NCBI GenBank assembly: GCA_002269645.1
Contig: NIVC01002860.1
Coordinates: 70,575-134,574, forward strand
Direction: 5' to 3'
Length of the DNA stretch: 64,000 nucleotides
Source: Macrostomum lignano
Taxonomy: Eukaryota
Both the position numbers and the translations under genes were made by a program. The notes below the pieces were generated by a model that made no database searches, was not told the DNA's origin, and worked only from the letters and a program-made list of their open reading frames with translations. Below, piece after piece: positions 10,436 to 16,500 of the stretch (its first letter is position 1; each line of letters begins with the position of its first letter).

Positions 10436-10511
10436 ATGAGGCGCCGGGCAGCCTCCGAAATTGCAGCCGCCGCGCTGCTTCTGTGCGCCTCTGTGGCTGC
10501 CGTGACAAATC
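10436..10511 (+). CDS. Nrx-1: Neurexin exon 1: signal peptide [25 protein letters not shown]
   Basis: ATG 10436, in-frame TAG 12 nt upstream, basic N-region plus hydrophobic core, donor GTGAGT at 10512 in phase 1 matching exon 2. Confidence 0.75.
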
Positions 10512-13500
10512 GTGAGTTTAACTGGGAGATACTGAGTGAGATGCTGGGGGAGATACCGAGTGCGACACAGGGGGAGACACTGGGTGAGATACTGAGTCAG
10601 ACCAACATACCCTGGTAGACACACTGTGAGACACACTGGAAGACACACTGGGAGACACACTGGGGAGACACACTGGGAGACACACTGGGAGACACACTGG
10701 AAGACACACTGGAAGACACACTGGGAGACACACTGTGAGACACACTGGGAGACACACTGGAAGACACACTGGAAGACACACAGGGAGACACACTGGAAGA
10801 CACACTGGGAGACACACTGGGAGACACACTGGGAGACACACTGGGAGACACACTGGGAGACACACTGGGAGACACACTGGGAGACACACTGTGAGACACA
10901 CTGGGAGACACACTGGGAGACACACTGGGAGACACACTGGTAGACACACTGTGAGACACACTGGGAGACACACTGGGAGACACACTGGGAGACACACTGG
11001 GAGACACACTTGGAGACACACTGTGAGACACACTGTGAGACACAATGGTAGACACAATGAGAGACACACTGTTAAACTAGCCGAGTCAAACAGAAGCAGA
11101 ACAGCAGGGACAGAAGCAGAACACAGCAGGAACAGAAGCAGAACACAGCAGGAGCAGAAGCAGAACACAGCAGGAGCAGAAGCAGAACACAGCAGGAACA
11201 GAAGCAGAACACAGCAGGAACAGAAGCAGAACAGCAGGAACAGAAGCAGAACAGCAGGAACAGAAGCAGAACAGCAGGAACAGAAGCAGAACACAGCAGG
11301 AACAGAAGCAGAACAGCAGGAACAGAAGCAGAACAGCAGGAACAGAAGCAGAACAGCGGGAACAGAAGCAGAACAGCGGGAACAGAAGCAGAACACAGCA
11401 GGAACAGAAGCAGAACAGCAGGAACAGAAGCAGAACACAGCAGGAACAGAAGCAGAACAGCAGGAACAGAAGCAGAACAGCAGGAACAGAAGCAGAACAG
11501 CAGGAACAGAAGCAGAACAGCAGGAACAGAAGCAGAACACAGCAGGAACAGAAGCAGAACAGCAGGAACAGAAGCAGAACAGCAGGAACAGAAGCAGAAC
11601 AGCAGGAACAGAAGCAGAACAGCAGGAACAGAAGCAGAACAGCAGGAACAGAAGCACGCACAGAACTGCAAACAGTGCTACAAACTGTTTTAAAGTTCAA
11701 CTTGGTCACCGCAGCCTCAGCTGCTGGGTCTGAGCCGTGGGAATCCTGCTGGCTCCCTGAGGTGTTTTCTTGCAGTCCAAAGGAAAACTGGCCCTGTGAA
11801 TTGCAGCCTTATGCTGAATTCCCTTTTATGAAACGTTTCACTCCCCGAAGCGAGGCAATCGAAGCTCACTGGGCAGCTCAAAAGTGCTCGCTACTCATGC
11901 GGCTGAGCAGCTGGCTTCGCTACTCTCTCGCAGGGGGGGGGGCTTTGACATAACGATTTCTTCAGCCGTTATGTCTGCTTTCACAAGAGCTTCTTTTAGT
12001 AGAGTTTCCATATCCTTTTCTTTCGCAGCCCGTCAGTCACCCTGCTGTTCAGTTGACTGCGAAGGGGGGGGGGCTCAGCGCCTCCCGAGTGACATATGGC
12101 GAGCCAAGTGCCGGCTCCGAGGCGCTGAGGGGAAATTATTATGGGAATATCCTCGCCCCTCCCCAAGCGCCCAGCCAATTCGCGCGGGTCCACCGTGGGG
12201 TGTTTATTTATCGACTAATTGCACCTTGCAGCTCCGGCGCCTCCCCCCGGAGACTACGGGGAGAATTCTCCCCTCCGATCCGTAGCGCGCCCCCCGCACT
12301 TCGATGGGACTTATTTCTCTCAGGATCGACATTTAAGGGTCAATTTTGGCGGCCTGACAGGGCGAGGCAGCGGTGCAGCTCCTCATTAGGGGTTATCAAT
12401 CAGGTGTGGGCCTCGGCAACCGGTTGTCACTGATCAGAGAATCGGGGAACAGGTGCAGCTCCTCACACCCGCCCGAATCCCACAGCTCCGGTGGGCCCCC
12501 GGGTTAGCTTAAAAGTACATTTCAGCGAGACGTCCCGCCAGCCCCCCAGGCTGTCAGGGGCGGCGCAGCGCTGGATTGTAGCGAAAATTGTGAATTCGAA
12601 ATCGATTGAAACACCTGGCCTGCAGGGGCGCTCGGCCCCCGGCATCCGTCCGCGCACCGTCAATGCAGGCTTCAAAAGACTAACTTAGTTTGAAATCTAT
12701 TTTTTATCTGTTGCTTTGGCTATTTCATCTCGGAACAACAGTCATTTCTGCTACTGCACTTGTGCCTGTGCTGTGCGCCAGCATCAGTTGAGCAGTTTTG
12801 AGTCTCCGCCGCGCGGATCACCGCGGCCTCAGCCAGGTCCGATGGGCCCCAGCTGGCCCGATCGCGCAGAGAGCCGTCGCCGCGGTTTTGGCTGAAGCTG
12901 ATCAATAATGCAGGCGCGGCAATGTTTGGCCAGAAAACAGCAGCATGACCGGACCGCCCCCTCCCGCCGGCTCCTGCGCGTCCTCTGCGCTTAAATAAAA
13001 CTGTACAGAGCTTTGCAGTCTGAAACATGACTGAAAAACAGCGCGCTTTGCGGAGCCATAAAATTTAGCGTGGGGGCTGGGCGCTGAGATTCTAAGGGGG
13101 TGGGGGGGGCAAATTAAAACTGATAGTTCGGGTTGTAAATATGCTCAGCTAAGGGAAGAGACACTGGTGTGCCACCGGTAGACTCTGGGAGACACATTGG
13201 GAGACACACTGGGAGACACACTGGCAGACACACTGGGAGAGACACTGGGAGACGCACTGTGAGACACACTGTGAGACACACTGGGAGACACACTGGGAGA
13301 CACACTGTGAGACACACTGGGAGACACAATGGGAGACACACTGGGAGACACAATGGGAGACACACTGGGAGACACACTAGGAGACACACAGGGAGACACA
13401 CTGGAAGACACACTGGGAGACACACTGGAAGAGACACTGGGAGACACACTGTGAGACACACTGTGAGACACACTGGGAGACACACTGGGAGACACAATGG

Positions 13501-16500
13501 GAGACACACTGGGAGACACAATGGGAGACACACTGGGAGACACATTGGGAGACACACTGGGAGACACACTAGGAGACACACAGGGAGACACACTGGAAGA
13601 CACACTGGGAGACACACTGGAAGACACACTGGGAGACACACTGGAAGACACACTGGGAGACACACTGGGAGACACAATGAGAGACACAATGAGACACACT
13701 GGGAAACACAATGGGAGACACACTGGGAGACACACTGGGAGACACACTGGGAGACACACTGGGAGACACACTGGGAGACACACTGGGAGACACAATGAGA
13801 GACACAATGAGACACACTGGGAGACACAATGGGAGACACACTGGGAGACACAATGAGAGACACAATGAGACACACTGGGAGACACAATGAGAGACACACT
13901 GGGAGACACACTGGGAAACACACTGGGAGACACACTGGGAGACACACTGGGAGACACACTGGCAGACACACTGGGAAACACACTGGCAGACACACTGGGA
14001 GACACACTGGGAGACACACTGGGAGACACAATGAGAGACACACTGGGAGACACACTGGGAGACACACTGGAAGACACACTGGGAGACACACTGGGAGACA
14101 CACTGGGAGACACATTGAGAGAAGAGCAAAAAAGAGATCAATAAGCGGCTTCCCCTTCAATTGAGGCATCGCCGACCCAATCAGCCTCGGTGCACGGCAG
14201 CCGGACGTCTCCAGTTTGATGTGCTTTCCGCATTTCCTAATTAAATAAGCGAGCACAATAGAAAACGGATGAGGCAGACTGAATTTTTTATACTTTGTTC
14301 CAAGCGTCTGATTTATCTGAAATTCTTTAAAAAATTTCTTGAAGTTTCTGCCAGCGCCGTCCTCCCATCGCCCTGCCCTCCCCCCGTGTCAGCCGTGGCT
14401 CAGGGGAGTTTTGCTAACTGATTGAGTTTCCCAGCATTAAGTCTGAAAGTTATTGCTGCGGGAGAGCTCGATGAAAACTTTCTCTCCATCCATATATTTT
14501 TGAGCGAAGCACTTTCCATATTTTCATAAGCCGCGAATTCCCCAGTTGGGGGGAGAAAGACTCTCCAGCTCGGGAAAATATCAAATGTGATGAGGCAGAG
14601 TCTGGACCATCCCTAGCCTATTGGCCTCATAATTCACGAGCTCTGGTCGGGTCCGTGAAGTGTAGCCGAACTCGAGAACGCAGGGTCATCGGGTGAGCAT
14701 CCCGAAGTCTTCGGAAGTGTTATCAGCCGAGAGGCTGCCGGGGGCTCCTTCATCGCTTTAATTTGCTAATGGCGCCCAGCAGAAACTGAAGCTCAGTCTC
14801 TGGAGTTTTTCTTTTTCTTTGCCTATCGCTTTTCTATCCGGCCCTCCCAGCCTCTGTTTGTTCCTCCCCTGCCGCTGTTTGCCCAGCAACACCGACCCAA
14901 GCCAACTTGTTGCCGGGCGCCGCTTGCAGTCAGGCAGGCAGCCACAGACTCGCGGCTGCTTCACTTCCTTCTCCCCTCTCTCCCTTTCTCCCCTGCAGTT
15001 CGCGAGGAGACGCCGACAACCTTTGATGGTCGCGGCTTCATCTACCTGGACCTCAGCTCGGATGCGCTGGGCATCTACGGCAACTCCGACACCATCAGCC
15101 TGATGTACCGGACGAGGCAGAGGTCTGCCTTCCTCATCTATGCCGGTGAGTTGGTGGGATTCAGAGTCCGGGATGTGGGATTCAGAATCTGGGACGTGGG
15201 ATTGAGTATCCGGGATGTGGGATTCAGAATCTGGGATGTGGGATTGAGAATCTGGGATGTGGGATTGAGTATCCGGTATGTGGGATTTAGAATCCGGGGT
15301 GTGGGAGTCAGCATCCGGGATGTGGGATTGAGAATCCGGGATGTGGGATTGAGAATCCGGGATGTGGGGTTGAGAATCCGGGATGTGGGATTGAGAATCC
15401 GGGATGTGGGGTTGAGATCACGGAATGTGGGATTGAGAATCCGGGATGTGGGATTGAGATCACGGAATGTGGGATTGAGAATCCGGGATGTGGGATTGAG
15501 AATCTGGGACGTGGGATTCGGAATCCGGGATGTGGGATTCAGAATCCGGTATGTGGGATTTAGAATCCGGGGTGTGGGAGTCAGCATCCGGGATGTGGGA
15601 TTGAGAATCCGGGATGTGGGATTGAGAATCCGGGATGTGGGATTGAGAATCCGGGATGTGGGATTGAGAATCCGGGATGTGGGATTGAGAATCCGGGATG
15701 TGGGATTGAGATCACTACGGGATGTGGGATTGAGAATCTGGGACGTGGGATTCGTAATCCGGGATGTGGGATTGAGAATCCGGGATGTGGGATTGAGATC
15801 ACGGAATGTGGGATTGAGAATCCGGGATGTGGGATTGAGATCACGGAATGTGGGATTGAGAATCCGGGATGTGGGATTGAGAATCTGGGACGTGGGATTC
15901 GGAATCCGGGATGTGGGATTCAGAATCTGAGGTTTGGGATTTAGACAGCTTATAGATTTGCTTGCAGAGCTGGTCTCAGCTTCTCTTGGCCACTGCTCCC
16001 TTTGACTGACAATTTAGTTCGCTAAAACTTGCAAACAGAAAAGATTTTGAACGCTACTCCTTATTCCCCAATCGCCCCTCCTAATCTGGTTGTTAAGCTG
16101 CATCCCCCCTTTACCAGCAGCTTCGCAGGTCCCCAGGAAGCAGCTGGGCAAACAGCTCTCTAAGCCTGGCCGGTCCCGAAGGAAAAAGAGGGGAGTAAAA
16201 TAGGGAGAGGGATGGCGAGGAAGCTGGGGATCTGCAGCTTGTAGCCAACAGCCCCCAGTGCGCCGGACCTCAGCGCCAAGGGTTGAAAGGATGGCGGGTC
16301 TCCGCAGCTTCATCTGTATCGCTCAATCCGGTCTCACGCGAGGCTGCCGGAGCAGTCCCGGCAGCGGTGCCCCCCCCCCTGTTGTTGCTGCCGCTCGGCG
16401 CGGTTGTCAGGCCGGGTGAGAAGAAAAAGAGGAAGAAGCGCTCACTCACACTCTGAGCTCCTTTACGAGCCAAGAAGACTCGGATGGGGGAGGCGCGGGC

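Follow-up and report, generated by a model that had tools for sequence, protein, structure and literature searches.

Does the neurexin gene of Macrostomum lignano really lack the first of the domains that define an alpha-neurexin, or does it make a shorter protein from a second start within an otherwise complete gene? We addressed this question in a stretch of 64,000 nucleotides (nt) of contig NIVC01002860.1 (assembly GCA_002269645.1, positions 70,575 to 134,574; hereafter "the window"), in which a 76-nt signal-peptide-like exon at 10436-10511, here called exon 1b, precedes a long series of neurexin exons. The original prediction, made from the window's letters, had described an alpha-neurexin lacking LNS1 and EGF1, arising either by lineage-specific truncation or as an isoform from an internal promoter. 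Our analysis indicates that the locus is probably a canonical six-LNS alpha-neurexin gene equipped with an alternative first exon, 1b, that possibly gives rise to a five-LNS isoform.

The LNS1-EGF1 exon upstream of the window

Where is the missing part of the gene? The window is identical to its M. lignano scaffold at 56,038 of 56,038 bases compared (L003:12604-68641, where L003 denotes NIVC01002860.1:57972-126612), and L003 continues 5' of the window. On this upstream scaffold, where the original prediction had proposed looking for LNS1 and EGF1, both are found at L003:9478-10314, in an exon whose end lies 2,290 nt short of window base 1. The apparent truncation was therefore an artefact of the window's edge. 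The features that define the 5' part of the gene are the following (positions without a prefix are those of the window):

L003:9478-10314 (scaffold 67449-68285): first coding exon, encoding signal peptide, LNS1 and EGF1; read directly
10386-10395, plus strand: TATA-like element TATTTAAAAG, 41-50 nt 5' of the exon 1b ATG; a weak candidate for a core promoter
10436-10511, plus strand: exon 1b, putative alternative first coding exon; 76 nt, 25 residues plus 1 nt, with a phase-1 GTGAGT donor
14999-15145, plus strand: exon 2, start of LNS2, with a phase-1 acceptor; used by both 5' alternatives

Several comparisons identify the upstream exon. From the ATG at L003:9478, hydropathy and the small -1/-3 rule give the signal peptide MLLWFLAAAAASVASTAA, and LNS1 was placed at L003:9478-10200. 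The start of the domain, ...LPAWQPCPSASLEFEFRTASHSALLLYAE..., is like the PxWNACC...SFxxKT of vertebrate LNS1, and a further stretch, VHFGGLP(P)QLRVDATQRT, is like GGIPPELRSVALRLT of the fish protein. Once two frame changes (weighed below) are corrected, the translation matches the Pfam family Laminin_G_2 over profile positions 1-123 of 126 with 20.3 bits, below the cut-off of 22.9; EGF1 has six cysteines and scores 17.8 bits against the EGF profile; and BLASTP aligns corrected residues 22-277 with residues 25-235 of fish Nrxn1a (E 2e-6). A hidden Markov model (HMM) of LNS1-EGF1, built from 13 non-flatworm neurexins and with the upstream exon as its positive control, matches L003 at 9764-10369 (E 1.7e-10) and 9187-10104 (E 1.9e-7). 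Within window positions 1-14998, this HMM, tblastn with four neurexins and tblastn with the gene's own LNS1-EGF1 all found no LamG or EGF sequence; the earlier statement that no such exon is visible in intron 1 was thus accurate. Protein word-index searches with the LNS1-EGF1 conceptual protein, the second with its poly-Ala removed and fused to the N-terminus of a paralog (paralog B, see below), returned no other copy.

Is this exon joined to the rest of the gene? Its donor at L003:10314 (AATC/GTGAGA) is in phase 1 and faces exon 2 across an intron of 17,287 nt. This junction is present in a deposited protein model. When a rough concatenate of the exons was used as query, the top match was PAA86589.1, followed by a 45%-identical M. 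lignano paralog and then by vertebrate and arthropod neurexins at ~30% identity; the longer member of PAA86589.1's 90% cluster is PAA54791.1 (BOX15_Mlig001379g23, 1417 amino acids [aa], 5'-partial). PAA54791.1 is the deposited model of this window, because its locus, L003, is base-for-base identical, and from exon 2 onward 1307 of 1307 residues equal our gene model, the micro-exon described below excepted. Its N-terminus reads ...QLRVDATQRTVFMAAFEKALQGQLRNIVYADC...AACSGDPCRNGGVCLADDDPDDRRCRCQEEFDGGRCEN and runs from the end of an LNS domain through a six-cysteine EGF (GGRCEN) that is spliced straight to 14999. The BOX15 models were made from RNA-seq data (StringTie/TACO) and mapped de novo transcripts rather than ab initio (PMC5730564), so both of the 5' junctions considered here, that of PAA54791.1 and that of PAA86589.1, are of RNA origin. 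Data on 5' ends obtained by RAMPAGE also exist for M. lignano (PMC5730564).

The full architecture of the gene is thus LNS1-EGF1-LNS2 / LNS3-EGF2-LNS4 / LNS5-EGF3-LNS6, followed by a transmembrane segment and a tail ending in ...EWYV. A gene without LNS1-EGF1 anywhere, for which five LNS and two EGF domains would be the complete set, is contradicted by nothing within the 64-kb window, but the exon encoding both domains is found on this scaffold only 2.3-3.1 kb upstream, and a deposited model joins it to exon 2; we regard that explanation as refuted.

Exon 1b in the EGF1-LNS2 intron

What, then, is exon 1b? As the original prediction had it, the exon is 76 nt long, begins at an ATG (10436) preceded by an in-frame stop (TAG, 10424-10426) and ends in a phase-1 donor (AATC/GTGAGT after 10511); all of this was read directly, as was its in-frame join to the acceptor of exon 2 (...cccctgcag/TTCGCG at 14999). 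It occurs identically at L003:23039-23114, inside the EGF1-LNS2 intron (L003:10315-27601), which has the position of the vertebrate splice site SS1, and its region is single-copy and not a repeat. The same 10511/14999 junction is found in PAA86589.1 (BOX15_Mlig002077g3), which has 1b as its first exon and splices it to exon 2, whereas PAA54791.1 skips it. PAA86589.1 maps to a duplicate scaffold, NIVC01000272.1 (L001), whose sequence runs collinear with the window and is 93-99% identical to it; exon 1b differs there by one synonymous base. The divergence between the two copies is a mosaic, with most unique intron segments at 0-1% and some blocks at 4-10% (e.g., 20751-24300 and 37500-39700), which points to gene conversion or to recombination of the duplicated chromosomes.

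How often would an exon of this kind turn up by chance? We scanned the intron for an ATG opening a frame of 15-45 codons with a hydrophobic 12-mer, K or R before it, and a phase-1 GTRAG donor. Across all 17.3 kb a single ATG qualified, that at 10436, and first-order Markov shuffles yielded one candidate or more with a probability of 0.02-0.15, according to the threshold.

Could the segment be an internal exon instead? The AGs before 10452 and 10467 would give in-phase inserts of 60 or 45 nt, i.e., an SS1 cassette spliced in through cryptic acceptors. These are the only in-frame AGs available to 1b, and neither has a pyrimidine tract; the ATG frame is closed by the upstream TAG. Such an insert would, moreover, place a hydrophobic stretch in an extracellular linker, and PAA86589.1 contains residues encoded 5' of both acceptors. 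Because no usable in-frame acceptor with a pyrimidine tract is present, exon 1b is best read as acting as an alternative first exon. A variant of the same idea has the segment reached by trans-splicing: the M. lignano spliced leader ends in ATG (PMC8629364), and its attachment at the AG preceding 10427 would bring that ATG into frame with the one at 10436. That AG (10425-10426), however, has the context TTAG, which fits the trans-acceptor motif [T/C]TNCAG (PMC8629364) poorly. Either route appears very improbable.

As an alternative first exon, 1b would work in a simple way. Transcripts from the upstream promoter would splice EGF1, in phase 1, to exon 2 and skip 1b, while transcription beginning near the TATA-like element (10386-10395) would give transcripts that are translated from the ATG at 10436, encode a signal peptide and join exon 2 in frame through the phase-1 donor. 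Cleavage is predicted near A21/A22, so that the mature protein would start 4-5 residues before LNS2, and the product would carry five LNS and two EGF domains. We infer that 1b has its own transcription start, that its transcripts extend to the transmembrane exons and that the short form is translated and functional. The internal-promoter isoform proposed originally is accordingly the half of that proposal that still stands in part: PAA86589.1 starts at 1b, the models are derived from RNA and a paralog has a comparable exon, but PAA86589.1 terminates prematurely in intron 8.

Paralogous genes and the weight of the rival readings

Is a signal-peptide-like exon before LNS2 peculiar to this gene? 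M. lignano has at least three neurexin paralog groups, together with recent duplicate copies; the gene described above and its duplicate are referred to here as A. Paralog B (P0002/P0037; loci L002 and L004; scaffolds NIVC01003103.1 and NIVC01001883.1) is 45% identical, and its LNS2-start exon lies at L002:5931. A scan upstream of that exon returned exactly one candidate, MLRQVLRLSLLALLVQTAWQL at L002:3125-3188, with a phase-1 GTGAGT donor. It lies ~2.7 kb 5' of paralog B's exon 2 and joins it in frame at the homologous acceptor (...WQL-E-KDEVPTTFNGRG). No nucleotide similarity was found between the signal-peptide exon regions of A and B, and word-index searches with the paralog-B N-terminus found no annotated protein that uses the B exon. 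The 3.1-4.6 kb of flank before this exon hold no LNS1-EGF1, which is uninformative given that the corresponding distance in gene A is 12.7 kb. Paralog C (P0090/P0192; UniRef A0A1I8GWM6 and A0A1I8H049), known from the older ML2 annotation only, is 52% identical to PAA86589.1 over LNS2; in P0192, which is fused to an unrelated N-terminal region, a hydrophobic stretch occurs shortly before LNS2.

A phosphatidylinositol transfer protein gene (280 aa) lies downstream on the opposite strand at all four loci fetched, paralog B included, and because of this common neighbor the A and B paralogs can be traced to a block duplication. In the window this gene occupies ~48100-56000 on the minus strand (Pfam IP_trans, E 5e-35; exon at 52600-53265).

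How well does the reading of 1b as a genuine second start withstand scrutiny? A number of observations weigh against it. The only model that carries 1b, on the duplicate scaffold, ends early, so that a full-length five-LNS membrane isoform is a predicted one; after exon 8 this model enters an alternative exon (acceptor ttcag/GCC, window 38510) and stops in intron 8. The signal peptides were called by hydropathy and the small -3/-1 residue rule only. The TATA-like box is altered in the duplicate copy, to TATTTAGAAG, although that is the copy in which 1b is annotated. The A copies differ by ~0-1% over most of the unique intron, and exon 1b is indistinguishable from this background. In paralog B, no difference separates the two copies over a block of 230 nt that takes in the signal-peptide exon and the 158 nt before it, and the flanks are 5-10% diverged, but the divergence of the B copies is patchy (0-9%) and the block is suggestive only. 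Finally, LNS1 can be read only with two 1-nt frame changes, both apparent deletions, one at L003:9765-9785 and one in a run of four Cs at L003:9996-9999.

A rival reading treats 1b as noise, produced in transcription by an occasional intronic start or in assembly by a mis-join of StringTie/TACO, with the six-LNS form as the sole functional product. The sole supporting model is truncated and has an unconserved intronic tail: the exon at 38510-38817 is open for 101 codons in the duplicate copy but for only 33 in the window copy, where a stop follows, so its tail is evidently unconstrained. PAA54791.1, the model for the window's scaffold, leaves 1b out; the chance of meeting such an exon is low, yet a probability of up to 0.15 is not negligible; and the A copies show no differential conservation. 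Against this stand the analogous signal-peptide exon of paralog B, at the same relative position and in the same phase, the hydrophobic pre-LNS2 segment of paralog C, and the exon itself, which encodes a well-formed signal peptide, starts at the first ATG that follows a stop and has a consensus GTGAGT donor of just the phase needed. On balance, we consider noise an unlikely explanation, if one to be taken seriously.

The frame changes bear on a different possibility, namely that they are real, that the upstream LNS1-EGF1 exon is decaying and that this copy can now be translated mainly or solely into the five-LNS form from 1b. In keeping with decay, PAA54791.1 is 5'-partial and its coding sequence begins exactly at the second frame change (the C run at 9996-9999), LNS1 scores just under the Pfam cut-off, and all three paralogs have a signal-peptide-like segment directly before LNS2. 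The assembly, however, was made with Canu from PacBio reads and polished once with Pilon (PMC5730564). Both shifts behave as if one base had been lost from a short C/G run, the exon is very GC-rich, and in an assembly of this kind residual consensus errors of this type are typical and a likelier cause than real mutation. In addition, the corrected sequence aligns end to end with LNS1-EGF1 profiles, EGF1 keeps its six cysteines and the junction from EGF1 to exon 2 is present in an RNA-derived model. Decay therefore seems improbable, and a canonical six-LNS gene with 1b as an alternative first exon is the reading we retain.

A broader proposal can also be made. Macrostomum neurexin genes may have, in their EGF1-LNS2 (SS1) intron, a second start that is conserved and yields a "short-alpha" neurexin, anchored in the membrane, with a signal peptide of its own, five LNS domains and two EGF domains. 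Isoforms of this class have not been described in any animal, and the B and C segments would then reflect selection for the short form. We put this forward tentatively, as a possibility that the paralogs raise.

The remaining gene and its place among neurexins

How ordinary is the rest of the gene? The part encoded in the window comprises 16 exons (10436-46038, 1332 aa), modeled by tblastn and inspection of splice sites, with GT-AG at all introns. With fish Nrxn1a as query, tblastn gave a collinear series spanning residues 238-1418, from LNS2 through LNS6 and the transmembrane segment to ...KEWYV; residue 238, at the start of LNS2 (REEYVATFKG), aligned to window 14998-15150. Pfam finds five Laminin_G stretches in the window-encoded model (Laminin_G_2) vs. 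six in fish Nrxn1a, so the LNS2-LNS6 order originally described holds for this part of the gene. EGF2 lies in exon 6 and EGF3 in exon 11; in PAA54791.1, Pfam gives two EGF stretches. Exon 16 encodes a single transmembrane segment and a short cytoplasmic tail with a C-terminal PDZ-binding motif, and a Syndecan-type match to this region (25.6 bits) is obtained in the window model and likewise in Nrxn1a. The exons downstream of exon 2, with two alternative exons, are as follows:

17889-18079, plus strand: exon 3, LNS2
20733-20750, plus strand: micro-exon of 18 nt (DKQEIL) at the vertebrate SS2 position; in PAA54791.1, skipped in PAA86589.1
23670-23819, plus strand: exon 4, LNS2
28163-28525, plus strand: exon 5, end of LNS2 and start of LNS3
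29092-29581, plus strand: exon 6, LNS3 and EGF2
32163-32386, plus strand: exon 7, LNS4
36433-36547, plus strand: exon 8, LNS4
38510-38817, plus strand: alternative terminal exon, used by the PAA86589.1-type transcript of the duplicate copy
39712-40055, plus strand: exon 9, end of LNS4 and start of LNS5
40489-40869, plus strand: exon 10, LNS5
41435-41672, plus strand: exon 11, EGF3
42084-42277, plus strand: exon 12, LNS6
43178-43349, plus strand: exon 13, LNS6; splits a Gly codon at its 3' end, at the position equivalent to SS4
44341-44774, plus strand: exon 14, last part of LNS6 (bearing a poly-Arg insertion) and stalk
45238-45374, plus strand: exon 15, stalk
45696-46038, plus strand: exon 16, transmembrane segment, cytoplasmic tail and stop

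The introns consist largely of minisatellite arrays (e.g., 1100-2100, 3000-3850, 5400-7100, 10550-11500 and 13200-14100), as does 48300-52400 in the neighboring region. Farther downstream, plus-strand open frames at 59447-61300 start with MGNELSAP..., a possible N-myristoylation start, and are followed by further exons; they have no Pfam match.

With the upstream exon added, the protein has the same domain order as vertebrate alpha-neurexins such as Nrxn1a and the same kind of tail (...E(Y/W)YV), and it is collinear with them at ~30% identity. It differs in being much diverged, in an LNS1 that falls just under the Pfam threshold and in the poly-Arg insertion in LNS6. Intron positions match at vertebrate SS2 and SS4. 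The micro-exon, flanked by AG and GT, inserts DKQEIL between ...KRNYEK and VNVIFDD, where vertebrate SS2 inserts fall between VTRNLRQ and VTISVDG. At the exon 13/14 junction (43349/44341), both position and phase (the split Gly) match vertebrate SS4, the site of a 30-aa insert (RYPA-G-RQLTIFN); the intron there measures 991 nt, most of it a 20-nt tandem repeat. Extensive alternative splicing has been said to appear exclusive to vertebrate neurexins (review, PMC12665717). The polybasic insertion of exon 14 (44470-44540) adds 27 residues to a loop of LNS6. Paralog B reads RPRSRRGRRS, and the annelid and insect neurexins we retrieved have a basic, R/K-rich stretch at the same spot, which vertebrates are without. 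The insertion could be a proprotein-convertase site.

How does exon 1b compare with the internal starts already described in this family? In vertebrate beta-neurexins and in the gamma forms of mouse Nrxn1 and C. elegans nrx-1, as at 1b, an alternative first exon with its own ATG lies in an intron of the alpha unit and is spliced in frame; the beta-neurexin first exon also brings its own signal peptide, to which 1b has a signal-peptide-like counterpart. The positions differ. The beta start lies 3' of EGF3 and leaves LNS6 only and the gamma form keeps no LNS domain, whereas 1b lies between EGF1 and LNS2 and would keep LNS2-LNS6, so that it falls outside the beta class. The neurexin isoform classes described to date are alpha, beta and gamma, none of which starts between EGF1 and LNS2 (PMC12665717).

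Are there precedents in other invertebrates? Some predicted proteins seem to begin at EGF1 or LNS2 (Owenia CAH1791707.1, Trichuris KHJ41389.1 and beetle models starting in EGF1), but they are flagged as partial or are without a signal peptide, and they look like incomplete models rather than precedents. Because such database neurexins are partial, a "missing LNS1" calls for caution in general. In a neurexin survey with PAA86589.1 as query, the best matches were annelid, mollusc, insect, hemichordate and nematode proteins, with no other flatworm among the matches named. A literature search on these locus tags and on Macrostomum or flatworm neurexins and their isoforms found nothing relevant.

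What follows from these results? The gene itself is a new but ordinary alpha-neurexin, for which two incomplete "hypothetical proteins" were on deposit, one (PAA54791.1) 5'-partial at a frameshift and the other (PAA86589.1) 3'-truncated. Domains that seem to be "missing" next to a window boundary, or at a model's 5' end, usually lie a little way beyond what is seen, in this case by 2.3 kb. Should 1b prove a genuine and productive start, internal promoters in neurexins would extend beyond the beta and gamma positions. LNS1-EGF1 is the least understood part of alpha-neurexins, and transgenesis works in M. lignano; a five-LNS isoform, if it exists, would amount to a natural experiment on what LNS1-EGF1 contributes.

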